DNA of 64,000 nt from Amphiscolops sp. MND2022 (taxonomy: Eukaryota): positions 11,160,001 through 11,224,000 of the forward strand of contig OZ076410.1 in assembly GCA_964187785.1 (NCBI GenBank), read 5' to 3'. The notes beneath the pieces were generated by a model. The model was given only the letters and a program-made list of their open reading frames with translations. It was not told where the DNA came from and did not search any database. Both the position numbers and the translations under genes were made by a program. This document shows positions 6,504 to 37,844 of this stretch, in pieces; the stretch's first letter is position 1, and every line of letters begins with the position of its first letter.

Positions 6504-6519
6504 CAAAACCTTTCATGTC

Positions 6520-11899: not shown

Positions 11900-12430
11900 A
11901 AGTGTGGGCGGAAATAGGTCGAAGGAACGAGTTCGAAAATCAGAGTTAGTCCTCGGGTCGACATACCAAATTTTTGAATGGGATTGAATTAACTCGGATC
12001 GAAATTTTAATTTTTGGGAAACAAATCGAATTGCCGCAGATAGAACCTTGTAGAAAAGTATAAAACGTGTCTCGGATATGTCCCCATATCCTCTAGTGCC
12101 CCGCGGCCCCTTGAGGCCGCTTATGTTCCCATCTTGCTAAGCGAGGTCGACCAGGAGCAAAGACCTAGCGGGGACGGAGATCGCGAAGCGATCGCAGTGG
12201 GAGCTGGTCTTTTCGACGGTGGGGGCGAGCGTGCATACACAGCATATGTTTCACCTTATTATAGTCAAACGACTTGAGGAGACGTTTTTATAGTTATTAT
12301 AGTCAAACTCGACCGATCAAAGAAGGCTTCAATCAAATTCGACCGCATTCCATTCGATCCCTGCAATTCGATGAAAAGGTTGGACCTCTGTGCTTTCGAC
12401 CAGAAAAATTCGACCTATTTACAGCCACCC
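11900..12430. mobile_element. MITE-like element with imperfect TIRs (GGCGGAAATAGGTCGAA / TTCGACCTATTTACAGCC) enclosing the GC-rich core
   Basis: Inverted termini and subterminal TCGA-rich repeats; the core is an inverted copy of 800-995. Confidence 0.5.
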
Positions 12431-13248: not shown

Positions 13249-14028
13249 ACGAACTATTGCACCGACTTCTTGAAAAATAATTGAGGTATATGCCTGGAAA
13301 GGTAAATTTTCTTGACGAGATCTCATTGCAAATCTGCAAGCAGAAAATGCCAAAAAACCTTTCTGGATAAGTTCTCTAAACACTCAAGGAAAGGGCAATT
13401 CCTTAGTAACAGCCCAACCGAACGAATAATTTTTTGGAAACACTGCTTCCGGACAAAACCCAGGCTAATAACTCCCATTTTAACAAATATCCTTGAAGTA
13501 TATAGTTTTAGACTAATGTTTCCGTCAAATCTTCAAATTAATTTGCGATAACATTTTATTTGAGACAACTGGACGACATCTCTGACACTGTTTTGTTGGT
13601 TTGTCGCTGTACTTGGGCTGAAAGAACTATCACAACCCAGCGAGATAATTCCTGGTATATTTCATTCTATCAATCCAAGGTTCTGTTTCATATACGGATT
13701 GCTTCACTGTGGTTGTTGTTTTTTGGGGAGATTGGCACACACCCAAATGTCGCATTCCTGCATTTTTCAAGGTTGCGAGGTTGAGTTTTGATGAAAAAGA
13801 ATGCCACATGTAACGCTCGGAAGTGTCTTAAGCCCTCAGGGTTGACAGACTGGGTTAATTGTAGGCTTTGCAATAGATGGCTTCAAATATAATGCGCCAA
13901 TTTGTCAAGAACGGAAGCCCGGAGCCTTGCCGAATTTAACTGTTGTAGGTGCTCCTAATAAACACGATCCCACTGTGTAAAGATGATAACTTTAGACCAG
14001 ATGCCCTTTTAATTCAGGCGTTGTTCAC

Positions 14029-16200
14029 ATGAAGAGAGTTCCTAAAAAGTCACGGATCCCCCTAGCTGAAAACTCATACCCAAAATTATTATTTGTGAAA
14101 CCCCGTCAAACATCGCTTTGTGGTGCTTATTGCACTCCTCTCCAAGCTGTATGTTTCGGACAAAAACCACCTCTAGGGGGTAAACGTCAGAGGTCATCAC
14201 TCAGTGCAATTATCAACAAGCGTATTCGGGATGGCGTCTATTTCCCCCACGCAATTGTTATTGAGAAAAACCCGAAACGCGACAAAAAACCGCAACAGAA
14301 CAGCGAGTTACATCGACGACTGCGTTTCATTTGCACTAAATTAGAAGAAAGTAATGGTAAAGCCGGAACCAGGATGGTAATAGGCGACGACAAGATTCCA
14401 GATATCACGGTCGACAGACAACTACGCGGCGGTCAAGTTGAAACATCCGCAGAGCGTATCTTGCTCTGTTCTGGACCCACAGATGTCGATTGTTTTTCAA
14501 CTCGGGAGTCTTCGTCGACAAGACTCTAAGGTCATTCCCAAACGGCTCTAGTGCAGATTTGGAAGGCGTTTCATCCTAAGTTTTGAAAGATTTGACAAAC
14601 GGGCAAACTGGACTGAATTTTCTCGGAGCCTTAAAAGATGGTGGAAGACTTTGTCTTATAGCTGTAGGCAATAATTCCGACGGTTTTCCGCAAAATGTGC
14701 CAGATACCATGTCTTCGAATCTCGTCAAACGTGGATCGGAAGTTGACAAGTAGGTGTAGGCACTTAAAGGGGCACTGAAATAGCCTCACATGTTTTCCGT
14801 TGTTTGAAAGAAAGCCCCTAGCCCAAAGAAGCAGTAATCATGAAAATTGACTTGGAAAATGCTTCCCATTTGATGGAGCGACATTTCATGCTAAGAAAAT
14901 TTTCGAGATACACGCTGAAAAATATAAGTAGTCACATTCGCCGTACAGTCAGCCAAGTTTTTTTCTGTTAATCAGTAACCAAATCTTGTGAAGGGGTCAA
15001 GCAAAGATATCCTGAGTCTCCAGTTTGTTTTCGAATACCATTCCCGATCTGATTGACAGGTTGGAGTCGAATATAACTTTTTGGTAACGCGACTATAGAA
15101 ATTTAAATGACGATTAAAGAACCGTTTTGAAAGATCTCAGAAAAAATGTTGTAGCAAAAAAACGCTTGTTTCAAAATTAAACCAACGAATTGCAAATTTT
15201 TCCCTTGCTGACATCACTGAAAGACGACGATTGACAATTCACCATCTTTCCAAGAAATATTTCCGTGCCAAACACCAAAGACAAATGAACTTATTATTCT
15301 TTATTTTTTGCTCGGGCCGAAATCGCAGGCTAACGTATTAGAAAAAAATGATGAACTGTAAAAAATTAAGTGAAAAACTTTGGTGAAAAACTAGATGCAC
15401 AATATGGTTTTTTTATGTTGGAACATTGATTCAGTTGCCTTCCCACGACAATTCCTCGGAAAACTTGTTCCGCGAGCGCTTGAGAATTGGTTGACTTTGT
15501 CCAATGAACATGAAATTTCTCTTAATGGATTTCCCGAAAAATGGGACCCAAACCTGTGTACGTCAAAACCGCCCAGGATTTGATTTCTAGAATGGATGAC
15601 AAAGGTTCAAAAGTTATTTACGTTCAAAGCCAATTCGTGTCTCAGATGCTGAACGTCGTTCCTTACTAAAACCTAGGCCTGAAACCTGATGATCAGCAGC
15701 ATCGGATTTGAACATATTTACGTCTCGGAGCCAACATCTGTGTTGCGCATACGTGCCACTGTGGTAAAAGAAATGAACGCGACGCTTTACACGGGCTTTC
15801 TTGTACCAAGAGTGCTAGTAGCTTCTCAAGTCATGGTACTCTCAATTCTATCATAAAGCTGACGTTGGGATCTCTCGCCTTACTTTCAAGGCTCGAGCAG
15901 CGTTGACTGTACCAAACTGATGGCAAACGCCCAGACGTTGTTACCAAGCTTCTTCGGGAACAGGGTAAACAGCTGTTGTGGGATGTCACTGTTGTGGATG
16001 ATCCAGTGAATTTTTTTTCAACACGCTTCTCTGTAAAATGCTGTCGTTCGCACGATGATCAACGAGCTGGCAGCTTTTGTAAGCAACGGATCTCAACGGC
16101 TCTTCAGATCGGGAATGCGGCCTGTGTTCTAGAAACTGTGAGCGACAGGAACTGAGAGACGCTTTGGAAAAAAATTTATTACAAACAGTTTATTATTAAA
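14029..16200 (+). pseudogene. Heavily degenerate CRE-like non-LTR retrotransposon (RT plus REL endonuclease)
   Basis: KLEESNGKAG near the start; degenerate RT (KIDLENA ~14845, GVKQ..PESP ~15000); REL block CAHTCHCG..HGLSC..DGKRPD..QGKQLLWDVTVVD (~15740-16000); QIGNAACVL end. Confidence 0.7.
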
Positions 16201-16329
16201 AACTTGTATATCATCATCACTTTTTAAAAGTTTGTTTCTACCGATCGACTGGGATAGTGGCTGGTATGAGTAATTTATTGGTTGTTTTTTGTTGTTATTG
16301 CTTTACTGGCATAGTGGCGGGTATGGACT

Positions 16330-16660
16330 CTCCTCCGTTCGTTGTAGACGTTTCGGTGTGTGTCTTCTACCCCGAACATGATGATACACATGGAACTTGA
16401 TTAATGAAGAAGATCCATGATAACTGATAATCTGTTGAATTTGAAATCCCATTTCCAACAAGTTGGCCACTATCTCGGGAACCCTTCACGGTACTGGCAT
16501 GATCGGTATATACTTTTTCACGATGTAAAGCTCGTCCTTCTCTTGGAATTATTTTCATCCACGTACTGTTGCTCCTCAGTGCAATTTTTGACGAAAGATA
16601 TTACCTCATCAAAGGCGACATTTGAGACTAATTGGTTTTCTAAGGCCTAATTCTTTGAGA
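16330..16660 (-). pseudogene. Remnant of the unidentified small-ORF family (copy 2)
   Basis: Reads NVAFDEVISFVKNCTEEQQYVDENNSKR; nucleotide similarity to 330-520 and 19660-19720. Confidence 0.45.
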
Positions 16661-17139
16661 AAACTTATGATGAAAAAAAACGTCTCCTCTGAATGATGCT
16701 CGAAGCATTTGTTCTTGCTTTAGTGCTCGAGTGTTCAGCTAGAACATCCACCATCGGAGTCGTTCTTCGTGAGTAATTAACGTCGCTTAATCCCATTTCA
16801 AGCCAACTGGTTACTAGTATCTACGAATTCATTCTAGCTCATTTTTTAAGGTGCAGCCCTGGAGCCTTCTCATGGATCTATTTTCACCCCCTAATGTTGC
16901 TTCATAGTGAAAAACTTGACAAACAGTTTCCGAGATTTTGGGCGGCGATGTTTCAGCATCTTTTGTTTTTCAAAGCCTATATTTCCGAGAGTATATGTGA
17001 TGCAGTGAAGATTTTCCTCTGAAATAGGCCCGACGCTAATGCATCTGTTCTAGTGGTCGAGTCTTCCAAAAGAGCAGTCGTATTCTGCGAGAAAAAAGGT
17101 CAATCGAGTTGTGAAACCCTGAATTCAGCGGTCACAAGT

Positions 17140-17580
17140 CACATGGCCTAAAGCCATTTGGCTTAGTTTTTTCGTCAAGTCAATTGCATTAAAATTTTAA
17201 AGCCAAATGACCACAAAATTAAACCAAGTATATTCTAACTCAAGGAATGGTTAACACAATCTTTTCCAGATCAAAACTGAAGTTAATTTTTAACGAAATA
17301 GTATAGAAACGAACAATGTTACGGAATGTTTAGCATATTTGTTGTATGACTCGGTCGCTTCCCACATTTATGGCACTAGAGGTATATGAAAATAGCTAAC
17401 TACGTTATAATGACAGTTTCGATTACGCGTTTTCAACTTAGAGATTTTAAGCCAAATGGCTTCAAGCCAAGTGACCACAACCCGAGACATTTGGCTTTTG
17501 AAAAATTAGGCTAGGTGACCAAATAAATTAAACCAAATAACTTTACGCCAAGCGACCAATTACCAATTATGCCAGTTGAC
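17140..17580. mobile_element. Second foldback/MITE copy (family of 676-1219)
   Basis: Same arm motifs (GCCATTTGGCTTAG; AAGCCAAGTGACCACAA; CCCGAGACA; TTATGCCAG) with a different, shorter centre that contains CATATTTGTTGTATG..CTCGGTCGCTTC. Confidence 0.6.
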
Positions 17581-17962
17581 TACTAATATCTGTGGAACCA
17601 TGCAAAATACTGGTATGATGGTTTTCATGGTGCAGCTTCGGACGCCTTCTTGTGGAACTCTTTCAAACCCCTAATTTTGCTCCCCACTGAATTTGTCAGA
17701 CAAAATGTTTGTTACACAAAGGCAACAAATTAAAGAACTTAGTTTTTAAAGGCATAAATCTACAGGGGTATTTGTGATACAGTAACAAGTCATCCTCGAA
17801 AAGGAGCAATGTTGCATTTGTTCTAGTGCTAGAGAGTGCAACCAGAGCAGTCTCCATCACAGACGTATTTCGTGAGAAGAGATGGTCGGTTGTGTTTGAA
17901 ACCCTATTTTCCATGCAGTTGGCTTCTAATAACTCGGAGAATTTTTCGAAAAAGTTTCATGA

Positions 17963-18821
17963 GGGAAGGACTAAGGTCCTCCGGTGTCGTTCTGATGAAA
18001 GGCAGACCTACAATCCTTTTTTGTAATTTTAGATTTAAACCCAGTTGTTCTGTCATCATTTCCCTGATTGTATGATGACGAACCTGACTCACTGTCCCTG
18101 TTTCCTGAAGACAATGAACTCACCACACTTTGAATTCTGGTATTACTCTTTCAGCTGTTGCAGAGTTCGTGGCTCTATTAATTTGCGAGTGCATCATGGA
18201 CATCGTGGAGTCCATTTCTTGAGACAGTCTCAAAGTAGTTTCTTTTGTGAATGTTTCCATACATTCCAAGAATCTATCCTGTCTAGGAATTGCGTTTTCA
18301 TTACCAAAATCTCTAAATTCATTCTTCTGGGAAGAATTTCCAATAGGATAAGAATTGGACTCATTGTCAAATTGGTTTACTGATCCCTCAATTGTATTTG
18401 TTACTTCCCTTTCAATAGGATTTTTGTTTTCGTTTCCTATTATTATTTCTAGATTATCGAGATCAGAAATCATGTCCATTTCTCTAGATTTACTTGCTTC
18501 TGCTTTCTGTCTTCTTGTTGAAGGCATAAGAAATTGTTACAAGGGAAGATTTCATTTTATTCTGTCTTGAAAATCAAAGTTTTGTTTTAACTGAACGTAA
18601 CAAGTACGTAAATGAGAATAGTCCCCGTGACTAGATGTATCGAGTTCATATACCCAAATCCACATGACACTCAACATATGGAAAATTATGAGGCTACTTT
18701 CAGAACAAAGGGTGTGAAAAAGTAAAAAAAAAGTAATGCAACGTGTCACTACAAATACCTGGTGACGTAATTTGCCATTCTATTTTGAGTATCAAAGCCT
18801 CGCCGGCCCAATTTGTTTACA
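17963..18821 (-). mobile_element. Probable old solo LTR of a relative of element A, containing the gag N-terminus
   Basis: ORF 18120-18527 (MPSTRRQKAEASKSREMDMISDLDNLEIIIG) is clearly homologous to element A gag (MPSTRKQKAKERRSRQLDMLSDVENVDIMLG). A TGTAA start is possible at 18821; coding similarity fades near 17965 with no further gag or pol. Boundaries are inferred. Confidence 0.5.
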
Positions 18822-21640: not shown

Positions 21641-23018
21641 AACATGATCACGCGTTTGAAATTGAACGATCATTGTTGAACTAATTGCAGCACCAATGAC
21701 ATTGCCTCATCAAATTACAGTGGGTGTCACTCAATACTCAAAAAATCCTTGTTTCTCGGAAAATTCTCTTGCCCTTGACTTTTTCCACTTTTTTATAGGG
21801 ACCCGAACTCAGACTCACTGGCCGCTAGGTCGTTTCCTCTGACTTGCAACCCGGTTTGGAAATCGGCGGACCGTAGCTCTCAACCAGCCAGCCGCGTTCT
21901 GTGGTTTCGGATACATTCATGAGAAAAAAGTTTGTTTCTGCGTCGAAGCTTTCTTTCAGTGTTTTCGGTGAGCGCTTTTCCTCTCCGGTAGTTTGTTCCA
22001 TTTATAGCTTTGATTTCTTCAACAATTATTCTCACAGTTAATTCAATGTAGCCAACCATGGATAAGTTTGTATATGGTGTTGATTGTTTGTCAAAGTCAA
22101 GGTTCTTCCACCTGATTGAAAAAGGAGAAACTGATTGAAAAAGGAACTTGAAGTCAGCTGAATCTAAAAGAAATTTTTTGTCTTGTCAGCGGAATCGTGT
22201 TGCCTGTTGATGTGTTAGTTCAAGTGGGAATCAGCTTACGTAACCAGAAAACGATTTTCTCACGTCCATCTAGAGCGTTAGAGGTGTTCGGTTCCCATTT
22301 CCCATTTATTTTTGGTAATTTGGAAGGTGCGATCATGAAGAAAATGTTTTACAGTGACATCTGAAAGCGTGGTAGTGGAGTTTGGGGTAGTTGAGGTCGG
22401 CTTGCGGTGAACGGATGCGAAGAGCAAGCTTTCACTTTGCAGTCTGATAAAAACATACAGTAACTCGTCAAACTGGGTTTGTGTCTTGAAGGTTGTAGTC
22501 AAGATCGTCAATCAAATTGGGTCACTTTATTTTACCTTTGTCTGCTGTTTCAGGTCCAATGGTTTCATGTTGTATGATGAGATCTGTGTTTTGACAGCGG
22601 TAAACTGGTTTTCTTGGGTATCTGTTTTGGTTTTCTAATAGCTATAGCATGCATCAATATGTTTCCATGCTATATTCTTTGTAAAATCTACACTTTGCGT
22701 CGCTTGTCGAGGTGTCAACAATACTGATCGAAAGAATGATGTTTTCGCTTCTCTACTTTCGTATTTGTTTTCCCTCAAATAATGTGCATACAGTCTCCAG
22801 TCTCATGCTCTAAGAGAGTTTCCCTCTCGCGATTAATTTTCTGGTATCACGTTCTTTCACTAATTGGTTGGGTCTAATTTTCAGTACTCGGATGCGTCCT
22901 GTTGTTTTTTGAATTTTTTTTGGCTGTAATTGACTGGAGATTTAGATAAGGAAGGTGAATTAAAAGTAGTATATATCAACACAAAGTTTAATGCAAGATC
23001 ATGTAAACTGATAGCTAG

Positions 23019-24625
23019 TGTCGCAGGCTGCCGCCTGCGATGGCAATTTTTATCAAATTACGTTGGAAGGAGATAACTCTAACCCTCCGCCAGGAGTCCT
23101 TCCTATATAAACACTGACAAAGACCAAAAGGTCATTTAAACTACATGTAATTTATTACTATGTACAGTATTTTGAATTTTACCATGAAAGACCTGTGGTC
23201 CTTGCGGCCTCAGTGCAATTGATTATTTTAGTCCGCGAGGATGTATTTTACTATTTAGTAAATTATTTTGTGCCTGTTTTGTAATCTGAATGTTGGTGTA
23301 ATTAATAGAAAACGTGTAAATCAATGAATTAATATGATGTAATAGCATGTAGAAGAGGAAACGCGTTCAAATGAACGCCTCTTCTAATTCACTGTACTCG
23401 CTGTACCAGTATTTTGCACCAATCAAAATGCAGTATATTAGTGACGCTCCGTGGACAGAATGTCTGCCACGGTGAAATTAACGCACAAGTGCTGCTAGTG
23501 CTGTAATTGACTGTGGCTACGTGGACTTAACGTCCGCTATGGTGAAATGCTGTAATAACATGAAATCATGTATTTTGAAAGCATGTAATGTTGTAGATTA
23601 ATTCTGAATGTACTTACAGGCCAATATAAACGTTTTCTCTTTGTCGGCTTAACCGTCAAAATCCCCCCCATATGGCTCTTTGATGTATTGACGTCATGCT
23701 GACGTAACCATATTTGACGCTATTTTTAGTTTATCATAACTATATTTAGTAACATGACGCCTGTAAATTTGCTTGTCATGCAGATCAGGGTATATATAGG
23801 ACGGCCCAAGAGACCGTGGGGACCAATCTTTTGGAAGCTCAACTCGAAGTCACAATTCAACTCGAACTGTATTCAATTACAATTGAAACTTTACTTTCAG
23901 TACCATCTGTACATTTCACTCATTGACCATATAAACTTTAGTCTGTATTGCCAATTCATTGTTGTTGTGTTAATTTTCTTCAATGCCTTCAACGAGAAAG
24001 CAAAAGGCTAAAGAGAGACGCTCTAGACAGTTAGACATGCTGTCAGATGTAGAAAACGTTGACATAATGTTAGGTAGTTACTCTAGAGATGATGAAGAGA
24101 ATAATATTAGTGAAAATGAAGTGAATTTAGACTCAGGGTCTAGCAGGCCACAGCAAAGTTCAAACGTCTTAGGAGAGGATTTTAGGTCATTACCAAACAC
24201 AAATAGTAGAGAAAATAGTGAATTCACGATTGAGACTACAAGACTAATTAACGAAGAAATTTCCAGTCAAATGTCAAGAGAACTGATTGAGATTAAAACT
24301 AGTTTGAATTCCCAAATCCAAGAAGCAATTACTGACGCAATAACAAGTACAGTGCTTCCTTCTATTCAAAATGCACTAGAAATGCAGGGGAGACCTAATT
24401 TCACCATGGTGGACCGAAGGTCTGACGGGCTACATCTTAGCCCAAGGTCGACCGAATTCACCATAACGGACCAAAGGTCCAGTGGGCTACAACGGAACGC
24501 CGAAGTAGGAAATTCACAGAAAACGAAGGAAAATCGCCACAAAACGTGTTTCACTCAAGAAAATAGTAGACTGAGGTCTAGAGAGAGTTCAACAGACTCA
24601 AATAACAGCGAACAAATTCGCGACA
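23019..24625 (+). repeat. Element A 5' LTR (1607 bp)
   Basis: Matches 36130-37735 with about 11 substitutions and one indel counted by eye (~99%); 6-bp terminal inverted repeat TGTCGC/GCGACA. Confidence 0.97.
23689..23800 (+). promoter_or_regulatory. Candidate U3 promoter: palindromic TGACGTCA (CRE/ATF-like), TGACGTAA and a TATATATA box
   Basis: TGACGTCA 23689-23696, TGACGTAA 23700-23707 and TATATATA 23791-23798, ~190 nt upstream of the gag ATG. Motif match only. Confidence 0.4.
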
Positions 24626-24637
24626 TGGTGACAGGAG
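24626..24637 (+). promoter_or_regulatory. Element A primer-binding site, embedded in the gag reading frame
   Basis: TGGTGACAGGAG immediately follows the LTR-terminal CA. It has one mismatch to the TGGTGTCAGGAG tRNA-Leu-type PBS; the tRNA assignment is tentative. Confidence 0.75.
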
Positions 24638-25739
24638 CCAACCCTACCCCACATATGGTTCCTGAGTTCCTCACTGGACGTCCCATGCAATCCTGTGAAC
24701 CCCTGCAACGTCAACATTCCAACAATAACGAGTCTCAGGATACAATCCCCCAGGTTTCTGAGACTACAACACCTACTACCGGTTCTGACCCCATTAACCG
24801 TCTAGCTGAAGTATTGGTTGGCATGAACAATCGTCCATCAGCACAAACGCTAATGGTACGACCTGTCAGCTCCACCACACTGACTTTTGACGGTAAATCT
24901 GAGAAATTTGAACTTTTCGAAGATCTGTTTCATACAATGATAAAAATGCAGCCTGATATGACCGAAGCAATGAAAATCAATCATTTTCATTCCTTGTTAC
25001 GAAAAAATGCCCTCCAAACTTTTCGTAATATTAACACGGCAAATAGGCAAACATTAGAGGACATCCTAGCAGTATTTCGTAGGAAATACGTCAAACTAGA
25101 GTCCCAGGCGACCGCCAAACACAAATGGCACAGATTGGTGTTTGATCCAAATACCATGAAACTGCCAGACTTCCTTGAGGAATTAAATCAAGGAGCCGAA
25201 AAAGCGTTTGGCGAGAACGCCCAGGCCATGATCGATAGTCTCCTCTACGCCAAGTTACCCCCAAAACTGAAACGCTCAGTCAATATGGCTAGACTAGAAA
25301 ATGCAACTTATGAGGAAATAGTTACTCATCTACAATGAGAATTAGAACTCAACGGACTTGAGGAGGGTGACGACATTCCAGTCCCAACAATGTCTACGGC
25401 CCCGACAGCAACACGACCGGGTACAGGCCTTCTTTCCTATGGAATCGACCCGGGAATTACTTGCAATTATTGCAAAAAACCAGGTCATACAAAGGACGAT
25501 TGCCGCAAACTGAAACGGAAAGAAGAACAAAAACGCAACGACGGCCAGAATACCAGAAAAGAGTATCCAAAGTGCCCGACTTGTGACAAAACGAATCACC
25601 CGGCGGAACGGTGTTGGAAATGCGCAGGAGCCCACCTCAAACCTAAAAACCTCAAACTAGAGGACTCCAAAACCGACGACCCGTCCACTAGTAATAATGA
25701 TGTCCAAAACAAACAAACAACCTCTATCCTGAAAAACCC

Positions 25740-25749: not shown

Positions 25750-28700
25750 ATTTGCCACGACTCCAATTTAATACAAAACTTCGTGTCCGACAATACATAA
25801 TATCAGACCCTTCAAACATATGATATACTGAATATTATACCTCTCTTAAAGAAACATCATCAGCTGACTGGCAGCAGCAGATGAAGACTCCTCCTACTTC
25901 TCACACCACTCTGGACCCTATGTCCAACAGACTACAAAATGATACTTCGACTATACGTCTCATACCTCTTGTGGATGACTATAACCCATACTACCCGGAC
26001 CCGGACTATGGTTTTGATCCCTATTGGGACGCTAATTGCTACAATCAACATCATCTATACTTCTACCGTAATTTCCACAAACCAAATCACATCAGAGAAC
26101 CAGATTCTTATGAAATTGATCGAGCCTTGAATATGGTTCTTGTGAAAGCCAAAGTCGATCCATGGCAACATGACACACCACAGAGATCTCAAGTCACTCA
26201 GGCTGAGCCCGACGATGAATTTCACCGTGCGGGACCCCAGGTCTCACTGGCCACAGCAGTTGCTGCCCGTTTTGCGACCACCCTAATCACAAGAACAGGT
26301 GAACCAGACTATGTACCGCTGACAACTAATCTTGGCCTCAAATATAAGAGACGAATGCTCTATTTTCCGATGGATTTTGGCGAACATTAGATGGCCTTGT
26401 AGACACGGGAGCCCTATCTAGCGCAATCCCAGAAGCTGATCTACGTAAAATCCGATTACTAGCCCTTCAGTCGATTGTCAAAGAGGGCCCGGCTCCTGGA
26501 TTCCAAATTATGGTTGCTAATGGACAGCTGGAGACTCCAAAGAGCACTGTCGAACTGAAATTTGAAGTCGGCGATATTGAATTTTACGAAATATTCATAG
26601 TCATGGAAAAACTCACCAGTCCATTGATTGGTCTTTCGTTCCTTCAGAGGAACAACACCATTCTGGATATGCGACAAGGTGTCCTGAATTTCCCATTCTT
26701 CTCAATGCAGTTAAAAACTGCAGATCACAAATACACAAATGTCATGGAGCCCATTTGCATTAGGGAGGATGTAACCATCCCACCTAATGACCGACAATCG
26801 GTCCTACTGGCGACACAACTGTACGAGAACACTACAGTTACTGGGATCCTTCAACCGAGCAACAACCTTACGGAAGATGGCGATATTGCTTTCTGTGCTG
26901 CTCTAGTCACATTGACCAATGGTCAAGCTTCAGTTCATTTGAATAATTTTACGGACAGTCCTTACACCCTCAAAAGGGGCACACAAGTTGCTACGTTCAC
27001 TGTTCTCACGCCAGAACAAATGTAATATGTCAAACCTATCGACCCGGTAACCACATGGCACCTGTTACAGGACAACCCTGAAAACGCTGCTTACTATGCA
27101 AGTAGCTTGATCAAATCCACCAAACCTGAGGACTTCAAGGAAAACTATTGGTTCCCAACACCAGAGAACCCAGGAGATACTCAGAATCATACACCTATCC
27201 AGAAAAGAATTTTATCAGAGCTCGTCAATCTTCAGGAACTGGAAAAACTTAATCCTCAGGACGACCCTGAGTCCAGACGTCAATTCCTATCCAACTTTGA
27301 TTGGACTGACTCTATGCTCCAACCCGCTGAAATTGCCCGCATAGAGGACTTGCTTGTTGAATTTCACGATATCTTCGCTAGGCATCGCTTCGACATAGGC
27401 ATGAACGAAGACTTCAAGGTCAAATTAACCCCGAAAGATGACTCCCCGGCCTATAGTCAAAGTTTGCCAACTCCAATCAATCTCAAGGAGGACATCCTTG
27501 TGGAATTGGCCTTACTCCACCGATATGGGATAATTACAACTCTACCATTCTCCAAATACGCCAGTCCCATTTTCGCACAAAAGAAACCCAATGGCAAATT
27601 GAGACTTCTAGTCGATTTGCGCAAAATTAACAACCTGATTTCGGATGACTATATTAACAACAATCATCCAGTGAGTACACTTTCTGATGCAGCCCAACAT
27701 ATGGCCGGAAAGAAGCTATTCTGTAAACTGGATTGCTCGCAAGCTTACCACTGTCTACAAATGGCTGACCAAAGGTCTATCGAAATGCTTGCCTTCAACT
27801 TCGCCAGCAGAACCTTTGCGTACAGAAGGCTAGCACAAGGACTTAGCAGAGCCCTATCGGCCTTTTCTAGCTTCATGCGCGAATATTTGGACAAAGTCAT
27901 CAAAGCCGACCAATGTGCCCAATATGTTGATGATATCGGAATAGCTGCTAATGATGCCGAACACTTTATCAAAAACCTTAGGGCCACATTTCAATGCATC
28001 CAAAAAGCCGGACTGAAACTTACAATGCATAAATGTCACTTTGGCGCAACCGAAATTGATTTCCTGGGTCGCACTATCACCCCGGCGGGAGTGAAGCCAC
28101 AACGACCACGGGTCCAAAATTTTCTGGAAAATACGAAATTTCCAAAATCAAAGAAAGCACTTCAGCGTTACTTGGGGTTCCTGAACTATTACAGGAACTA
28201 CATCCCAAGGCTATCAGAAAAACTAACACCGTTTTTCAAATTGCTTACGAAGGATGAAAAGGTCCTGGTCACACCGGACCTCCTGGAGAAATTCACCGAG
28301 ATAAGTAAGGCTCTTGATCGATGTTGTGAATTGGCACTCAAACAACCCCTTCCGAACAAGCAAATAGCACTTATGACTGACGCTAGCTTTTCGGCCGCAG
28401 GGTACGCAGTCCTCATCGAAGACGATCCCCACGAGAAATATACATCTACGAGGAAAGCCTTCGCACCAGTAGCTTATGGATCCAAGACCTTTAGTCCTAC
28501 CCAATTGAAAATGTCCATCTATGCAAAGGAATTCTTGGCCATTTTCTTTGCCTTCAAGGAATTTGGGCATATATTTTGGGGAACTCCAAAACCGGTGATA
28601 ATACTTACGGACAACAAATCAGTCACACGATTTTTTCAGACAAAAATTATTCCACCAACACTATGGAACGCATGTGACTATGTTATTCAGTTTAATTTCA

Positions 28701-30762
28701 CAATTGCCCATATACCAGGCAAAAACAACACCGCCGCAGACTATCTGTCCCGGCTCGAAACCTCTCCAAAAGAAAAATTGATCCTCAGGATACGAGAAGA
28801 TATCCCAACAACACCGATTGAACTACATGTCCAATCGGCGGGAGTGTCGGAAGAGGAACAAATTTTCTACACGGAGGATGACGACGAGACAGAAGAACAA
28901 ATTCTACAACGCAAAAAGGACGCAAGACACGATCCAGCAAATCAACTACCAGATATCTCATTCGAAAAATTCACTACACATAAAAGCGATTATCACAAAC
29001 TAACAACAATTCAAAAATTATCTTATACAAACACTATCGCAATCGAACAGAACAACGACGTCATCTTACAGCAATTGCGCCTTAAAATTCTGAAAGAAAA
29101 CTACTCCGAGACCATATTAATGCAAGACAATCGATACCAACATTACTGTCGCCAAATGGACCGGCTGTCTGTCATGGATGAAATTATCACTAGACAGTAT
29201 TTTGATGAAACAGGCTCTGTTAAATACAATCAAGTACTCTTACCTAAGCACTTAATTACAGAACTACTTGAATCTTTACACGGGAAAGCAAATAAACACC
29301 CGGGAATATCAAAAATGCTTATTGAAATTCGACAAAAATATTACTACCCTGGAATTGCGAAAATTGTTAAAAAATGGGTTCAGGGATGTGAAACTTGTAT
29401 CAAGGACAAAAGAATTCCAAATGCCTCTATCACCCCTGAACTCCTTAATTTGCCTGAATGGGACCTTGGACCAGAGGATGCAATGCAAATTGATCTGTTA
29501 CCAAATTTACCACCAAGTGGCGGATACGAAAATATCATCACCGCACTGGACGTGTTTTCAAGATATCTTTTTGCATATCCAGTCACGGATGCTTCGGCCA
29601 CAAATACGGCAAAAGTCATCATAGACATTATGACTAAACACACTTACCTGCCTACTACTTTGATTACTGACAAAGGTTCGGCCTTTACGTCCAAGCTAGT
29701 GGCTGAAATTGCTCAAATCTTGGGAATCCAAATAAAATGCGCAACTACAAAACACCCACAGACGATTGGTAAATTAGAAAGAACACATGCTAGTCTCAAA
29801 ACGAACCTCAAAATGGCCTCAGGGGACTACAGGCGACAGTGGCATAAATATCTGCCGTTAGCCGTATTGAACTACAATACAACTTATCATGCCACCCTGG
29901 GATGTGAACCATCTAGAATTTTCCACGGACGGATCCCATATAACATATTGGATCACAAATTGGGCCTTAATCCTATCCCTAAAGTCCTACCGACTACGGA
30001 TTTTGCAGACGAATTTCAGCGACGCACGCAAATATTACTAGATTCCACGAAGAAAAACATCATGCAGTCATATTTGAAGTACGAAGAATACTATGACCGG
30101 AAGGCCAAAGCGGCTCCTTTGAAACAGAATGACTATTGTTTTATACTACAACCTATTGCTGATTAGTTAGAAAACTCAATTCCAACAAAACGCAACTCCT
30201 ACACCGCATCAGGCTGCGCAAATATGAACCGAACACCGTCTTACAGGACATCAGACCGGAAGGCAATTTGCACCCGGACGACGAAATTATTATACCGCAA
30301 GACGATTTATATGTCATTACCTGGGAAACAAATTTTGGAGAATTTCGCAATTCCGCTGATACACATGCAATTCCCATGTGCCAAGATGACCTAGACAATT
30401 CTAGTAACTTTGACAATGATACCGCAACGCAAGACGAGATTTTCACCGACGTGGACCTTACGTCCATCGGGCCCACCATGAAAAGGGTGCCAGGGCCCCC
30501 GATAACAATTTCACCAGCGAGGACCTTGAGTCCCCCGGGCTACACGAAAATGACAATTTTGATATGATTCAAGAAACCTGCTCAGATCGCTTAAATGAAC
30601 AAATTGATGATCCTGAATCATAAGGAGGGAGCGATACTATCGTGCCCGAAGTATTAGACGATGAAAATGATGATGTGCTAGTAGACAATAAAAGTCCTAG
30701 GGGAGGAAAATACAACCTTCGTCCTAACCCCACCCCCAACTTCACTGATGAATACAGATACT
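25750..30762 (+). pseudogene. Element A pol: protease, RT, RNase H, integrase (disrupted)
   Basis: LVDTGALSS (~26400, after a frameshift at ~26385); stop at 27023-27025; RT (LRLLVDLRK, KLDCSQAY, YVDD); RNase H (TDAS, ELL/EFL region); IN HHCC and D,D35E (QIDL, ITDKG, KLER); deletion at ~30160; tail ends KYNLRPNPTPNFTDEYRY*. Confidence 0.95.
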
Positions 30763-30919
30763 AGACAAACTCTAAATTATCGCCCCTTTTTGAATAAATA
30801 CTTTAGCAGGGACTGAACTAACTTGCGAACTAAAGACATAATACGAATAATGAGAACGAATAAACAAAACGAAATATATACAAAAGAAAGACTACTGCAC
30901 ATGTATACATACAGTACAA

Positions 30920-32058
30920 TTATAGTTTAGATGTGCTTCCACTCGAATCACAAGACTTGGAAATTGGTGCCTCATCGGCCTCAGTAGCACTACGTTGGGA
31001 AGAGGGCTTGCCAGGGGATATACGGACCACCTTTGGAGATTTGCCTGAAGTAGACCGACCAGTCCCAGACACGGATGATATTCTTAGGCTAGAACTTAGG
31101 GTCTCTCTAATCTGTTGCCGACCAAAATGGTTGAAGCTGTCCCAAGGACTGTAGGTGCTTTCCAGACCAGTACCACCAAAGGTCGGCTCCAGATGTAGGA
31201 ATCGAGAAATGGAAGCTTCAGATGTGAGAGCGTCAAGTCCACGGGAAACGCTGCCGAGAAACGACTGTATGGGTGCCACAACATCAAACATGCTGCAAGT
31301 AGGATCATCGGTCCTCGCGGAATCAAATCGGACACCAGGGAAACTGAACCTGGGTTCGTCCAAGCAAAGGCAACAAAGGCGAAAGATTCTCGTGAGGCGA
31401 CGTCTGGTTTTGAGTGCCTCTTGACTTGATATGAATGTGGTAGCATCGGCAATAAGTAATTTCGGCTGCTGGACACCGGGATGGAGACGACGTAATTCAT
31501 CGATGAATGAAAGGTATTCTTCTGTGTACACTGGCTCTTCTCCTGGGTCCACGACCCCACGGAGCCTAAAACTGGAAAAAAGCTGCTTGAAACAATACAT
31601 GGCTTGTTCCACCGGGTCCACGAGAAGAACCTCCAGGTCAAAAGAGCCAAGCCCGCGCACAATATCGGAAGTGAAACGGTTGAGCTTCTGAGTGGCTCCA
31701 ACTAAATAAGCCACATACCCCCGGGCAGACCTACCGAACTCCTCACGATTGTTAGCAGTGATTTCTTCAAGGCTCAAGTTTTTGTTGTCCCCTTCATTGC
31801 GCTCTTTTTCGGCCTTTTGTTTGCAACCAATATCGAGACGGTGTCCGAGTTTGGAGCGGGTTATGAAGTCGTCTACCACCAGGGCTTTGGCTTCGGGGAA
31901 AGAGAATTGCAAAATACCATGATTGTCGTTGTCAGCAGGCAGACTACTAGGACGGATGCACCTGCGGGCAAGTTTGAAGAGGAATTGGCACAATTCCTTG
32001 TAAACGTGGAAACCTCTGTCCCGGCGCGACTTCAAGTTCAGTGTAAAACTGTTGGTGT
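30920..32058 (-). CDS. Antisense accessory gene, last exon (phase 1 entry; ~378 aa to TAA)
   Basis: The acceptor TTCCTTTTTAG at 32059 puts the preceding exon in frame with the 420-aa ORF. Confidence 0.8.
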
Positions 32059-32128
32059 CTAAAAAGGAATACATTGCGAAAAGCCCGATTATCACAGGAA
32101 TGAACAAACCGTCAAAAAACCCACTTAC

Positions 32129-32210
32129 AATCCTGGACCAGCCGGTAAAAAAGCTCAAGTCGGCTAGGGAAAAGGCAGTCATACACGATCGACCACTCCA
32201 GGTTCTGCGG
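32129..32210 (-). CDS. Antisense accessory gene, 82-nt exon (PQNLEWSIVYDCLFPSRLELFYRLVQD)
   Basis: Flanked by TTGTTCTAG (32211) and GTAAGT (32128); phases 0 and 1 are compatible with both neighbouring exons. Confidence 0.78.
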
Positions 32211-32281
32211 CTAGAACAATGGGAAACTTATGCACATATGGACTTGCGGTACCAGAAGCCACAAAGAAGTAGGATACTTAC

Positions 32282-32416
32282 TTGTCTTCGGACTCCTTGG
32301 TACTCTTGTGTCGGCGCATTCTTGCTCAAGTAAGAGTGGACTTTAGACCAATTGTCGAGGAGTTCTCTACACAAAGCAGGCAGTCCACAGATGTCCAACT
32401 GGCAAGTACGGATGGC
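32282..32416 (-). CDS. Antisense accessory gene, 135-nt exon (AIRTCQLDICGLPALCRELLDNW..VRRQ); may instead start at 32500 with one in-frame TAG
   Basis: Acceptor CTAAC..GTTTTAG at 32417 (alternative GAATAG at 32501); donor GTAAGT at 32281; phase 0 on both sides. Confidence 0.7.
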
Positions 32417-32548
32417 CTAAAACATGGCAATGGAAGTGTTAGGTCCATTGATTTCAGTCGATAACTTAGTGCATAGCTGCAGTGCTAACGTGTATCGCAA
32501 CTATTCAAAACTAAAGCTTAAGAACAGGGAGAATTAAGATCAGCATAC

Positions 32549-33034
32549 CCTTGATAATTCTGGCGAGAGCAGCACCCAACCCAGCTCCAGAAATCCTCCC
32601 AATGAAACCACAAGGTAACGCAGAGTGGAGAAGAAGTCCACACGCCCGAAAACACTCTGGCTCTTTCGGTGCATTAGTTGTGGCAATGACAATTCTTCAA
32701 ATCTGGAGGGACTTTGGACGCTGAAGGAACTGTACGGACTTAGATCCATCAATTGAATTGTCCTCATACTACAGCCAGTGCAGCTGATGAGTTTGGGAGT
32801 GGTGGAAATTGCCGCCATGATGTATGCAATCAGACAAATTTCGGCATCGGTCTGTCCTTGCAGCCTGCTGGTCCGTTTCAGTAAGACACGGCAAAGTTCG
32901 TCTTGGTACCAGAAGCGGACAAAAGCAAGCATGAAGACCCCATCACTCGCAAACTCCACGGCATATTCACCATTCGCGTTGATCTGGGCCGCTATGTGGT
33001 TGACGAGTTCACAAAACATGTGATGGAACAAAAC
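32549..33034 (-). CDS. Antisense accessory gene, 486-nt exon
   Basis: Acceptor TTTCATTGTTTAG at 33035 and donor GTATGC at 32548; exactly 162 codons. Confidence 0.78.
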
Positions 33035-33126
33035 CTAAACAATGAAACAATTTTGCGATCTAACCTGCTAGAACATCAGTTTAGTCAAAGTCATGGTACT
33101 TGGAATGGTTTTACGGGAAGACTTAC

Positions 33127-33678
33127 AGTCAATCGCTCTCGGCCCCAGTTGAAATCGGTGAAAAGAGCCTGGTGGTTCACTATGACTCCCACGTCATTCC
33201 AGAAAGCCTTTAACACTTCCAGGTCGCCATAATGTGTTAGGAATCGTCCAAGAACAGACAGTTGGATTCGTGCCCTGTTGTCCGACGAGGAAGCCATGTA
33301 GTCCGTACCCGACATATACTCCTCATAGAATGGGAGTTTCTGCCCGATCTCAACCAACACTTCGTGCCTGAATTTAGGAAGCTCCAATTCCAATTGATAG
33401 GGAGTCAAGGTCTTTCCATCTTTTCCTCTGACCTGATGTATTTTGGCCTTGGTGACTGGATCCACTTTATACAGGTGTTCGTACCTCCACCTCTGATCCT
33501 TGCGGAGATGTTTCTCGGTGGAGTGATGTCGAAGGATCTCCCTTGCCCCTTTTCCGTAAATCGATACGTTGGACTTACAAATCTGGCAGTAGAACTTGTA
33601 CGGGTTCCAACGTGTGTCTACTGGTCCAGATACGAAGGTGCGGTTCCAGTCGAGGGAACGGGAACAATCACCGGGGAC
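33127..33678 (-). CDS. Antisense accessory gene, zinc-finger exon (FYCQICKSNVSIYGKGAREILRHHSTEKH)
   Basis: Open for 184 codons in the frame of ORF 33091-33465; ends at a phase-0 GTAAGT (33126); CxxC..H..H at 33588-33508. Confidence 0.78.
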
Positions 33679-34250
33679 TCAGACAATTTTGGTCTTTCAG
33701 TTTCTGGTGGTAAATTGGGGGAAGAACTTAGTTGGATTGGCTCACTGACGCTACATTTCGCCTGTCGACCACTGGGTCCGGGTTCGCCTTCTACCTCAGC
33801 TCGTGTTTCAAGTTTACGGGTGAGATAGGCCTGTATGCTTTCTCCGGAACTGCTCCCATCCGTTCCAAGCAAATTAAGCAATGAGGGAGAGTAGTCAGGT
33901 GACTGTAGTCCCGGGGCACCAGTGTCCATTTCGGTCATGGCAGCAGGGGACAATCCACCTCCCGTTCCTTGAGTACCCGAAGCCTGGGAAGACCCTTCTT
34001 CAATTATCTCTATAGCAGTAGGCAGCACATTTACAAGAGGCAGTTGGCCAGAAGCTTGGGGAATTGGGGCATCTGAGCTTCTCTCCACCCCATGACCAAG
34101 GGTCTCATTGGCCGCCGCGTCTTCAGTGATTCCAGTACCACTGCTCATGTTGTTACTCTCAGCAGCTGTTTGGTTTGGTTGGCCGTTTGGTTCCTTTTCT
34201 AAATAGAAAGGAATAAATTCGCGCGGTTCACTTCCTGCATAAGAATCCAT
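33618..34250 (-). CDS. Low-complexity S/G/E/P-rich ORF; probable N-terminus of the antisense gene, joined by a frameshift or a small intron
   Basis: Good ATG context (CTAGATGG); overlaps the zinc-finger frame by ~60 nt in a different frame. Confidence 0.55.
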   Translation of the reverse strand: MDSYAGSEPREFIPFYLEKEPNGQPNQTAAESNNMSSGTGITEDAAANETLGHGVERSSDAPIPQASGQLPLVNVLPTAIEIIEEGSSQASGTQGTGGGLSPAAMTEMDTGAPGLQSPDYSPSLLNLLGTDGSSSGESIQAYLTRKLETRAEVEGEPGPSGRQAKCSVSEPIQLSSSPNLPPETERPKLSESPVIVPVPSTGTAPSYLDQ

Positions 34251-35402
34251 CTAGCCGCTTTTGAAAATCTTCCGGAAGTAAAGTTCATTTCATTCAACCC
34301 AATGTGAAAACATTTCATGATGGAGGAAGTAAAGTAGTCAAGCCTAAACCCTGATCAAGTTTAGTCAAGACAAATTAAAAGAACCAACCTGATGCAATTT
34401 CCATGACGGGGAAGCAGAATTCTTTTACTCCAAAATCGGCTGATTGGGGGTACAATTCCGAGGGAGGGACAGTGAGATTCTGGAAGACTCCTTTAGAAGA
34501 TTGACGGCTGTGAGTTTAGCTGTTACTGTAGCCAATGCGACTTAAAGTCCATGCCTCGCGTTGGGGAATTGGATACTCAATGGGATAATTAAGCAATTCA
34601 AGTATTGAATGAGAAAAGGAGTGAAGAATACTGGATCACAGACACAGAAAGTGAATTATTGTATAATACTAATACTTGTACTTTTCAACTTTACTAGACT
34701 TACAGTCAAGTTACGCAATATCTTAAGCCTCGAACACTATCAATTACTTATTATCTTACTTGGACGTCGTGGTCTACTGACTACTTCTTTCATTTATAAT
34801 TATATACCAATTATGCCATATTCCCTTATTACATTTAGTCAATTATAATCCCTTTTAGCATGGATTGAGACTGCCAGTGATATTCATGTCTTTATTCAAT
34901 TATGGAAATCATTTCTCCGTTTAGAGCAGTATTAGTTTAGAAAATCGTCAGTTTCATTCATTTTTCATCCATTTTCATCATTCATTTATCAACGACACCT
35001 CATTGGCTACTTAACTTGATGTAGCCGAGCGGACCGAAGGTCTTTGATGGTGGATTTATTTACTGACGGTTAACTTGAGTTAACACTTATTACACCTTTT
35101 CACTACTATCAAGTAGTTGTGCAAACAACTACAAGGCCCTTCATAGACCAATTAACAAGAAGTTTACCTTACTTATGATTTCTGGAACTTCGGCAAAATC
35201 TACTTATATGGAATGTTTAGTAAAGATTTAGGGAAGATCAGAAAACCGTTTCCCCGCCAGGAAACCCCGCGAAAATGAGAAGACCGGCAGTCCAAGTAGC
35301 TAGAAGAGAAATCATTCATCACAATTTGAAAAGTGCAAATCAGTTGAATAAAGAAACCTCAGAATTGCGAAGAAAATCTTTCTTAGTAGATTTCGAAATA
35401 AG

Positions 35403-36221
35403 ATGGAAATGAATCTACCGTTCATCCTAGACGACCTCTCAGTTCTCCCGGTCAGTCCTAGTTACTACTCTTCTGACGAAGAAATGGATGTGGACATTCA
35501 GTCAGTCAGTGCTACCAGAGACGACACTGAAGATAGTGATATAGAGGTTATCGCGTGTTACCGACAAGTGCCGATCCAGTCAGAAGGGCAAGTTGCAGGA
35601 CGTAAAATGACTGTGGAGTTGACTGAAGGTACAGAGGACACTTACTCAGATTTTCCTTGGGAAGATTTTGATAGTATGATGCGATTGGTCGACAGTCAGG
35701 CCGACCCTCTGGACAGGGGAGCAGGGCCAAGTACTGCTACCCAAAGCAGTAGTCCACCCATAAAATATTGTGGGAGTCTAACGCCTATAGTCGACTCACC
35801 GCAATCTCCCCCGCCACACGAACGTGGGCCGACTTATGGTCCGAGCGACAATAACTTGTCCCCGCAGCTTAATCAGCCGCTACCGCTGAGTTCACATATA
35901 CAAGGGATCAGCGTGAGAATGGCCTCCCATTGTGGACAGCCTAATTCGGCAATAAATGGGGACTGTATTGTTTGTGGACGCAGTTACGAACAAATAAAAG
36001 AAACAGCAGTACTAGACTTCCTAGAAAGCACGACCTACAGAGGTGAGAATTACGCAGACCGATTGAGAAGGAGAGCAGCCTACTTAGCCGGAATGGACCA
36101 GGGGACAGTGCTCTTCATCCCTAGGGGAGTGTCGCAGGCTGCCGCCTGCGATGGCAATTTTTATCAAATTACGTTGGAAGGAGATAACTCTAACCCTCCG
36201 CCAGGAGTCCTTCCTATATAA
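35403..36221 (+). CDS. Sense accessory ORF (272 aa; acidic disordered N-terminus, HC..CxxC C-terminal domain) overlapping the PPT and 3' LTR
   Basis: Intact ATG-to-TAA ORF; crosses AGGGGAG|TGTCGC at 36129/36130 and ends 92 nt inside the LTR. No env-like transmembrane segment is visible. Confidence 0.72.
   Translation: MEMNLPFILDDLSVLPVSPSYYSSDEEMDVDIQSVSATRDDTEDSDIEVIACYRQVPIQSEGQVAGRKMTVELTEGTEDTYSDFPWEDFDSMMRLVDSQADPLDRGAGPSTATQSSSPPIKYCGSLTPIVDSPQSPPPHERGPTYGPSDNNLSPQLNQPLPLSSHIQGISVRMASHCGQPNSAINGDCIVCGRSYEQIKETAVLDFLESTTYRGENYADRLRRRAAYLAGMDQGTVLFIPRGVSQAAACDGNFYQITLEGDNSNPPPGVLPI
36121..36129 (+). promoter_or_regulatory. Element A polypurine tract
   Basis: CTAGGGGAG abuts the 3' LTR start TGTCGC; the purine run is short. 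Confidence 0.7.
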
Positions 36222-37735
36222 ACACTGACAAAGACCAAAAGGTCATTTAAACTACATGTATTTTTTTACTATGTACACTATTTTGAATTTTACCATGAAA
36301 GACCTGTGGTCCTTGCGGCCTCAGTGCAATTGATTATTTTAGTCCGCGAGGATGTATTTTACTATTTAGTAAATTATTTTGTGCCTGTTTTGTAATCTGA
36401 ATGTTGGTGTAATTAATAGAAAACGTGTAAATCAATGAATTAATATGATGTAATAGCATGTAGAAGAGGAAACGCGTTCAAATGAACGCGTCTTCTAATT
36501 CACTGTACTCGCTGTACCAGTATTTTGCACCAATCAAAATGCAGTATATTAGTGACGCTCCGTGGACAGAATGTCTGCCACGGTGAAATTAACGCACAAG
36601 TGCTGCTAGTGCTGTAATTGACTGTGGCTACGTGGACTTAACGTCCGCTATGGTGAAATGCTGTAATAACATGAAATCATGTATTTTGAAAGCATGTAAT
36701 GTTGTAGATTAATTCTGAATGTACTTACAGGCCAATATAAACGTTTTCTCTTTGTCGGCTTAACCGTCAAAATCCCCCCATATGGCTCTTTGATGTATTG
36801 ACGTCATGCTGACGTAACCATATTTGACGCTATTTTTAGTTTATCATAACTATATTTAGTAACATGACGCCTGTAAATTTGCTTGTCATGCAGATCAGGG
36901 TATATATAGGACGGCCCAAGAGACCGTGGGGACCAATCTTTTGGAAGCTCAACTCGAAGTCACAATTCAACTCGAACTGTATTCAATTACAATTGAAACT
37001 TTACTTTCAGTACCATCTGTACATTTCACTCATTGACCATATAAACTTTAGTCTGTATTGCCAATTCATTCTTGTTGTGTTAATTTTCTTCAATGCCTTC
37101 AACGAGAAAGCAAAAGGCTAAAGAGAGACGCTCTAGACAGTTAGACATGCTGTCAGATGTAGAAAACGTTGACATAATGTTAGGTAGTTACTCTAGAGAT
37201 GTTGAAGAGAATAATATTAGTGAAAATGAAGTGAATTTAGACTCAGGGTCTAGCAGGCCACAGCAAAGTTTAAACGTCTTAGGAGAGGATTTTAGGTCAT
37301 TACCAAACACAAATAGTAGAGAAAATAGTGAATTCACGGTTGAGACTACAAGACTAATTAACGAAGAAATTTCCAATCAAATGTCAAGAAAACTGATTGA
37401 GATTAAAACTAGTTTGAATTCCCAAATCCAAGAAGCAATTACTGACGCAATAACAAGTACAGTGCTTCCTTCTATTCAAAATGCACTAGAAATGCAGGGG
37501 AGACCTAATTTCACCATGGTGGACCGAAGGTCTGACGGGCTACATCTTAGCCCAAGGTCGACCGAATTCACCATAACGGACCAAAGGTCCAGTGGGCTAC
37601 AACGGAACGCCGAAGTAGGAAATTCACAGAAAACGAAGGAAAATCGCCACAAAACGTGTTTCACTCAAGAAAATAGTAGACTGAGGTCTAGAGAGAGTTC
37701 AACAGACTCAAATAACAGCGAACAAATTCGTGACA
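36130..37735 (+). repeat. Element A 3' LTR (1606 bp), including a duplicate gag N-terminus (37093-37740) that is stopped by the TAG of the TSD
   Basis: Direct repeat of 23019-24625. Confidence 0.97.
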
Positions 37736-37844
37736 GCTAGACTGTATCGTATGTAGCAACTTCCATGAATGTTCGTACAGTATGGTCTATGTTAGCAGTT
37801 GGCAGGTACTAAGAACTTAAAAGCCATAGTGGCATCTTCTCTCA

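Follow-up and report, generated by a model that had tools for sequence, protein, structure and literature searches.

In the 64,000-nucleotide stretch of Amphiscolops sp. MND2022 DNA analyzed here (the window: contig OZ076410.1 of assembly GCA_964187785.1, positions 11,160,001 to 11,224,000 of the forward strand), a Ty3/gypsy (Metaviridae) long terminal repeat (LTR) retrotransposon, element A, carries a five-exon gene on its antisense strand, between pol and the 3′ LTR. We are fairly confident that this gene is a stable part of the element, that it encodes a trans-acting accessory protein probably stemming from a captured hAT transposase, and that the copy in the window is a broken one. Its features, in window positions, are the following.

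34251–34440, minus strand: conserved block upstream of the ATG with GGAA (ETS-type) motifs, candidate promoter and 5′ untranslated region (UTR)
33638–34250, minus strand: exon 1, 5′ part, with the ATG at 34250–34248 and a low-complexity N-terminal region
33638–33651, minus strand: deletion junction within exon 1; the 994-nt loss is specific to this copy, shifts the frame and removes about 330 codons
33127–33651, minus strand: exon 1, 3′ part, with a C2H2 (BED-like) zinc finger at 33588–33508
33035–33126, minus strand: intron 1, 92 nt, GTAAGT..GTTTAG, phase 0, from the comparison of copies
32549–33034, minus strand: exon 2 (162 codons), whose predicted structure forms the first half of an RNase H-like domain
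32417–32548, minus strand: intron 2, 132 nt, GTATGC..TTTTAG, phase 0; 66–141 nt elsewhere in the clade
32282–32416, minus strand: exon 3, 135 nt
32211–32281, minus strand: intron 3, 71 nt, GTAAGT..TTCTAG, phase 0
32129–32210, minus strand: exon 4, 82 nt; amino-acid identity of 63–96% across lineages
32059–32128, minus strand: intron 4, 70 nt, GTAAGT..TTTTAG, phase 1; precisely absent in one clade
30920–32058, minus strand: exon 5, 379 codons plus the stop at 30920–30922; all-alpha C-terminal region in an AlphaFold model
30167–30919, minus strand: convergent spacer of about 750 nt from the pol stop to the antisense stop, putative 3′ UTR and poly(A) region

A preliminary description of this DNA had proposed the four minus-strand introns, and the sequence confirms them at these coordinates, all GT..AG and with phases 0, 0, 0 and 1. 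The two short exons that it predicted, exons 3 and 4, are also confirmed. Its alternative version of intron 2, 48 nt long and ending at 32501, had to be rejected: it meets a TGA stop at once and is not conserved. The proposal that the fragments join into one reading frame is correct as far as the intron phases are concerned, which are compatible, but in the window copy the open reading frame (ORF) beginning at 34250 does not share the frame of the remaining exons.

An alignment of other genomic copies had been suggested as a check of this gene model, and it bears the model out: the ratio of nonsynonymous to synonymous substitution rates (dN/dS) is 0.07–0.25 in the exons, and the introns drift in length and sequence and keep GT/AG. 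The close copies compared were 17 others with 80–99% identity. Donors are GT in 67 of 68 cases and acceptors AG in all 68, despite an intron divergence of up to 39%, and the introns diverge about twice as much as the exons. In copy L018, for example, the four introns are 36, 39, 16 and 33% different, versus 12–19% for the exons, with GT/AG kept. Some splice sites have changed in ways that preserve the signal (e.g. GTATGC to GTACGT, TTTTAG to TTTCAG). In subfamilies with about 70% DNA identity, the proteins of the exons are 66–93% identical and the matches end at the predicted exon boundaries. The dN/dS value is 0.068 against L039, the 80% lineage (dS 1.15), and 0.19–0.25 against closer subfamilies; for the 70% lineages dS is saturated and dN is 0.13–0.15. 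Third codon positions change 4–5 times more often than the other positions. Taken together, these substitution patterns indicate that the antisense gene is under purifying selection.

More distant lineages were obtained from a second assembly, ERZ25074608. It belongs to the same species as the window, as shown by the flank of L045, which matches a single locus of the window's genome at 97–99% identity, and by P0042, which is 100% identical at seven loci of that genome. In these lineages, whose proteins are 39–61% identical, all four introns are found at the same codon and in the same phase, with lengths of 91–153, 66–141, 69–192 and 68–203 nt and unrelated sequences. ORF-caller fragments that read through an intron present conserved exon sequence on either side of a variable stretch; P0374 and P0396, for instance, run through the variable intron 2 into the conserved exon 3. 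Likewise, the exon-1 ORFs of relatives all diverge directly after the ...RL(T/S)-VS donor. Judged from these comparisons, the four-intron structure is far beyond chance.

One of the introns has been lost in part of the family. The six sequences in which exons 4 and 5 are fused form a single clade (99/99 support) that is nested among intron-bearing lineages under a midpoint root. The DNA of L048 reads ...RLVRDYVNSF... without intron 4, exactly the predicted junction, and its introns 1–3 remain. One precise loss of intron 4 is the simplest reading of this clade. Precise intron losses are commonly explained by recombination with the cDNA copy of an mRNA that had been spliced, and this one, as a pattern among copies, indirectly supports splicing at the predicted site.

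The frame of the window copy is interrupted in exon 1. The ORF from 34250 stops at 33618–33620, and the zinc-finger ORF is in another frame, starting from 33678. The loss of frame is due to the 994-nt deletion, which is a deletion relative to every other copy found: in a search of the window's own genome, all of these split the query at 33638–33651 and have about 980 extra nucleotides there. Imperfect 14-nt repeats at the same positions flank the deletion. In copy L024, exon 1 is open without interruption over more than 704 codons, which begin at the same ATG and include the zinc finger, and L032, a natural copy elsewhere in the genome, splices in silico to an open frame of 1,319 codons. The size of the product is thus larger than the 800–1000 amino acids first estimated, and the window copy, with about 204 and 797 codons out of frame with each other, is a pseudogene unable to make the protein. 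At the junction, Logan contigs from four DNA-like runs hold the undeleted form alone, by which the deletion is neither confirmed nor refuted.

The position of the gene within the element is constant. About 20 close copies, the subfamilies with 80% and 70% DNA identity and the lineages with 39–61% protein identity all have it in antisense orientation after pol and before the 3′ LTR, and in every lineage a conserved sense ORF of about 270 amino acids sits between it and the 3′ LTR. Two deletion derivatives in ERZ25074608, L046 and L047, have 100% identical LTRs and are 2.9 and 3.8 kb shorter than L045. Reverse transcriptase (RT), RNase H (RH) and integrase (IN) are gone from both, but gag, the antisense gene and a portion of the protease region have stayed, and the exon-5 product is identical. 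A first look at the whole genome gave 7,694 candidates for exon-5-like sequence, of which 108 were scored, and most of these are open. The clade of elements, about 15.7 kb long, is very abundant, and element A is a decayed member of it. The ranking of lineages differs between pol and the 3′ module: pol is 85–87% identical to that of L044 and L045, whose antisense protein is 39–50% identical, and 80–86% identical to that of L040–L042, whose antisense protein is 75–78% identical. This discordance hints at recombination between lineages or at unequal rates.

Retrotransposition removes only introns that lie in the sense of the genomic RNA, a principle exploited in antisense-intron indicator cassettes. 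In the sense genomic RNA of this family, the introns of the antisense gene read CT..AC; they are therefore not removed and are inherited by every new copy. The preliminary description had proposed that element A propagates an intron-containing cargo gene by keeping it antisense. According to the comparison of copies this holds for the family, in which the gene is stable and selected and its introns are inherited through retrotransposition, but the window's own copy is broken. The two-transcript element that it also proposed is, on this comparison, a putative one.

What the protein may be was approached with the exons searched and folded one at a time. Pfam scans covered all window pieces and 76 sequences across three alignments (window pieces included), and their single match was a weak C2H2 one at the finger. 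As deduced from L032, the protein would begin with a long low-complexity N-terminus that contains conserved islands, continue through a basic stretch and a C2H2 (BED-like) finger to an RNase H-like domain (hAT/DUF4371 type, no acidic triad recognized), and end in a conserved all-alpha C-terminus. Exon 1 has a conserved start, MDSYSGSEPRxFISF, followed by low-complexity stretches, an island SRALIKEYF...VADET, the basic run and the finger, WNxYKFYCQICK...REILRHHxTExH. In this finger C553, C556 and H573 are invariant and H579 is at least 90% conserved, and 22 of the 24 members show a weak Pfam zf-C2H2_ZN292 match there. Homology and exhaustive profile searches returned unnamed ENA ORF fragments of 93–808 amino acids alone, none of them from a named proteome, and the databases searched held no full-length gene model or named protein. 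A features search of the ESM Atlas with exon 5 gave no usable match.

The AlphaFold model of exon 2 (28 homologues, pLDDT 70) has the topology helix-b1-b2-b3-a1-b4-a2, corresponding to the start of an RNase H-like domain, and such a domain is likely to be present. In Foldseek searches against AFDB, the named clusters in the top 30 are all hAT-derived, with E values of about 1e-4: TTF-type, DUF4371, ZMYM1-like, ZBED5-like and ZBED8-like. The same model matches Hermes in Foldseek with a probability of 0.94–0.99, and VIA-align superimposes its residues 1–110 on Hermes residues 153–264 (Z 6.3, root-mean-square deviation 2.7 Å). Three of its residues are strongly conserved: E27 in b1 is nearly invariant, and G87 after b4 and D97 in a2 are invariant. 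The model of exon 5 is all-alpha, with a pLDDT of 64. One weak fold match of exon 5 is annotated as a hAT C-terminal dimerisation domain. At the sequence level, this domain (PF05699) was recognized in none of the 24 exon-5 sequences at E <= 1, despite 150 scored matches elsewhere in the genome. The genome is indeed rich in ordinary hAT elements (150 scored Dimer_Tnp_hAT matches among 2,215 candidates), and possible donors of the captured gene therefore exist in this host. A scan of the genome with the DUF4371 profile found nothing.

Several observations weigh against the reading that we prefer. We infer the splicing of the antisense gene from the comparison of copies. In the four DNA-like runs, contigs cross the introns unspliced at multi-copy depth, and the joints seen are short-sided and do not match the introns. 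Downstream of the antisense stop, no AATAAA or ATTAAA occurs on the minus strand. All relatives found are from one species. As to the origin of the protein, none of the 76 sequences of the three alignments gave a Pfam hAT, DUF4371 or zf-BED match, and PDB profile searches gave no match. The hAT relationship is drawn from one model of a partial domain, with pLDDT 70 and TM-scores of 0.4–0.5, and VIA-align gives Z values of 6–6.7 also to unrelated RNase H and ASKHA folds. By its position in the model, without a residue-level alignment, G87 stands where the second catalytic D would be expected. The acidic DDE triad was not recognized and, to judge from the model, looks lost, and the protein is probably not an active transposase. 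The exon-5 model found no convincing match in PDB, AFDB or VIA-align.

These points give some room to another origin, in which the gene is real and selected and its protein is not hAT-derived: it would be some other zinc-finger protein of generic RNase H-like fold, captured by an ancestral element either from a host gene or from a transposase or integrase of a different lineage. The VIA-align scores to Pelota/eRF1, sugar kinases, RT RNase H and integrases equal or exceed that to Hermes, retroviral integrase cores head the Foldseek PDB list for exon 2, a Dimer_Tnp_hAT match is missing together with the other Pfam matches named above, and the C-terminal model has no assigned fold. However, such an origin does not account for the exclusively hAT-derived named clusters among the top 30 of AFDB, nor for the Hermes alignment, which covers the helix and b1–b4 of the catalytic domain. 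The order of zinc finger, RNase H-like domain and long helical region is also that of hAT proteins, and the single weak match of exon 5 is to their dimerisation domain. We therefore regard a non-hAT origin as rather unlikely. Descent from a hAT transposase is plausible and, as far as the models allow, somewhat favored, with several of its defining features failed or left open.

The region upstream of the ATG may contain the promoter of the gene. Comparison of the window copy with L039 gives 87–97% identity over its 190 nt, against introns that are 33–39% different. The block holds TTACTTCCTCC and the palindrome ACTTCCGGAAG (34269–34279), and the first codons hold CAGGAAGTG. L045 and L048 retain these upstream and first-codon motifs, L044 retains part of them, and within the window they are unique. 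The GGAA cores of the block resemble ETS-type sites. In the four DNA-like runs, word depth at 34188–34400, a stretch coinciding with the block and the first codons, exceeds that of the remaining gene about tenfold (2,400–8,500 versus 150–900), which we read as a block common to many more lineages. At the other end of the gene, positions 30721–30900 of the spacer are 82–90% identical to L039.

It is very unlikely that the antisense unit matters mainly as RNA, acting as double-stranded RNA or small RNAs that regulate the family, with the protein secondary. The convergence of the gene and pol on the spacer would fit such a role, and antisense regulatory RNAs have been discussed for other LTR elements (PMC7264820), but it leaves unexplained the low dN/dS, the excess of third-position changes, the open frames, the invariant zinc ligands and the conserved intron phase. 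Hardly any credence can be given to the idea that the gene is peculiar to the window copy, as a host-gene fragment or a separate hAT transposon recently nested there, or that its ORFs and splice sites arose by chance. Many ordinary hAT elements do occur in the genome, but every copy and lineage examined has the gene in the same position, a recent hAT insertion is contradicted by the lack of an 8-bp target duplication and of terminal inverted repeats above chance level around it, and chance is excluded by selection and intron conservation. Remnant hAT termini considered around the antisense gene were rejected for the same lack of repeats and duplication.

The reading of an accessory gene that is part of the element could work as follows. 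The block with GGAA motifs immediately upstream of the ATG would serve the gene as an internal promoter of its own, and transcription would end in the spacer opposite the pol terminus. The antisense transcript would be spliced four times. Its product, which probably descends from a captured hAT transposase, would most likely bind DNA in the nucleus and, without catalysis, assist the element family in trans as an accessory factor, in regulation or targeting. A more far-reaching proposal, which we can put forward tentatively, is that this clade took over a DNA-transposase-derived protein as an accessory factor needed for its success, which might for example direct integration, activate transcription from the LTR or work against silencing, and that the loss of intron 4 reflects reverse transcription of the spliced mRNA by the machinery of the element.

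The assignment of element A to Gypsy in the preliminary description is borne out by an LTR pair, a target-site duplication and Gypsy-type pol domains in order on the plus strand, to which a primer binding site (PBS)-like sequence and a purine run can be added. The LTRs have TG..CA ends, are each about 1607 nt long and are 99.25% identical over a repeat of 1609 nt (self-BLAST). The features of the element other than the antisense gene are listed below.

23014–23018 (left) and 37736–37740 (right): 5-bp target-site duplication GCTAG, read at the LTR ends
23019–24625, plus strand: 5′ LTR (TG..CA), by self-BLAST, ends read from the sequence
24626–24643: PBS-like TGGTGACAGGAGCCAACC, directly 3′ of the 5′ LTR, read from the sequence
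23983–25338, plus strand: gag ORF, 451 amino acids, DUF1759 (Pfam)
25881–27025, plus strand: protease/dUTPase region, two ORFs in the window copy, weak Pfam gag-asp_proteas and dUTPase matches
27107–30166, plus strand: pol with RT, RNase H and integrase, 1019 amino acids, Pfam RVT_1, RT_RNaseH, RT_RNaseH_2, Integrase_H2C2 and rve in that order
35403–36221, plus strand: sense accessory ORF, 272 amino acids, entering the 3′ LTR, conserved in relatives
36123–36129, plus strand: polypurine tract-like AGGGGAG, directly before the 3′ LTR, read from the sequence
36130–37735, plus strand: 3′ LTR, by self-BLAST, ends read from the sequence

The PBS-like sequence that starts after the 5′ LTR at 24626, TGGTGACAGG... 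(TGG...), is a candidate identified by reading the sequence. The gag ORF starts inside the LTR, and its first 214 codons are therefore present again in the 3′ LTR (23983–24625 and 37093–37734). The same arrangement is seen in L045, in which gag spans 16527–18323 and the LTR starts at 17674. The weak dUTPase match lies between protease and RT (26510–27025 in the window). In L045 a single ORF of 1720 amino acids (11362–16524) spans protease, dUTPase, RT, RH and IN. The window copy is decayed, since its pol is split into several ORFs. Within the pol region of L048, an ORF with Ribosomal_S5 domains (13695–14258) may be an inserted retrocopy. The 272-residue sense ORF shows amino-acid identities of 79% in L039 and 41–46% in L044, L045 and L048, and had no Pfam match. 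Upstream of element A, positions 18129–18527 of the window (minus strand) have weak gag similarity (29% over 133 amino acids) and are probably a remnant of another element.

Antisense genes are known from other retroelements. In plant Ty3/gypsy elements, the antisense ORFs designated aORF-3R have been described for maize Grande (gene23), rice RIRE2, Silene Retand and Phaseolus PvRetro13, and also for the fungal element Boty; they occur in the majority of a family's copies, an internal promoter of their own has been demonstrated in the case of Grande, and they are thought to be regulatory (PMC7264820). The gene described here is likewise antisense, in the same place between pol and the 3′ LTR and in copies across the family. 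Compared by description, the aORF-3R products have no clear similarity to known proteins, and introns are unmentioned in the review (PMC7264820). In contrast, the present gene has an animal host, five exons with four phase-conserved introns, and a predicted product of about 1,300 amino acids with a zinc finger and a likely RNase H-like domain.

Spliced antisense genes are found in deltaretroviruses, namely HBZ of HTLV-1, the type 1 human T-cell leukemia virus, and APH-2 of HTLV-2 (PMC3185765). They too are protein-coding genes on the minus strand of a retroelement, in their case with a spliced and polyadenylated mRNA and a nuclear regulator as product (PMC3185765). The HBZ gene begins within the 3′ LTR, contains a single intron and specifies a bZIP protein of about 200 amino acids (PMC3185765). 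The candidate promoter of the present gene is instead internal, some 1.9 kb away from the 3′ LTR; the gene has four introns, and its protein, about 1,300 amino acids long, is unrelated. With Hermes and the hAT-derived DUF4371, TTF-type and BED proteins (ZBED5, ZBED8, ZMYM1-like), this protein shares the domain order and the predicted fold of the first half of the core. It differs from them in that no hAT Pfam match, acidic triad, dimerisation domain or terminal inverted repeats were found, and in that its gene lies inside a retrotransposon. The LTR retrotransposons of bdelloid rotifers have captured extra ORFs (env, DEDDy, GDSL, CC and TM; PMC5408684) and are similar as animal LTR elements that keep acquired genes downstream of pol. 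The bdelloid ORF3s are on the sense strand, and introns are unmentioned in that paper (PMC5408684).

The preliminary description had called the antisense gene of element A the best candidate for an undescribed system. This is too strong, as antisense ORFs (PMC7264820) and spliced antisense genes (PMC3185765) are known, but a five-exon antisense gene for a transposase-like protein is undescribed in the literature that we found: our search met no description of a multi-intron antisense gene in a Gypsy element.

Engineered retrotransposition indicator cassettes carry an antisense-placed reporter intron that is not spliced from the element RNA. The same antisense-intron logic would apply here, in a natural and long-lived gene with four introns. 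If our reading is true, this family is a natural counterpart of that assay trick, a retroelement that propagates a multi-intron gene of probable DNA-transposase origin. For annotation, it means that gene predictors and ORF callers see fragments of the antisense gene only. The large and diverse clade present in a single genome offers many independent lineages in which the roles of accessory genes may be asked, and the same lineages lend themselves to the study of intron loss and retention in a reverse-transcribed gene and of module recombination between elements.

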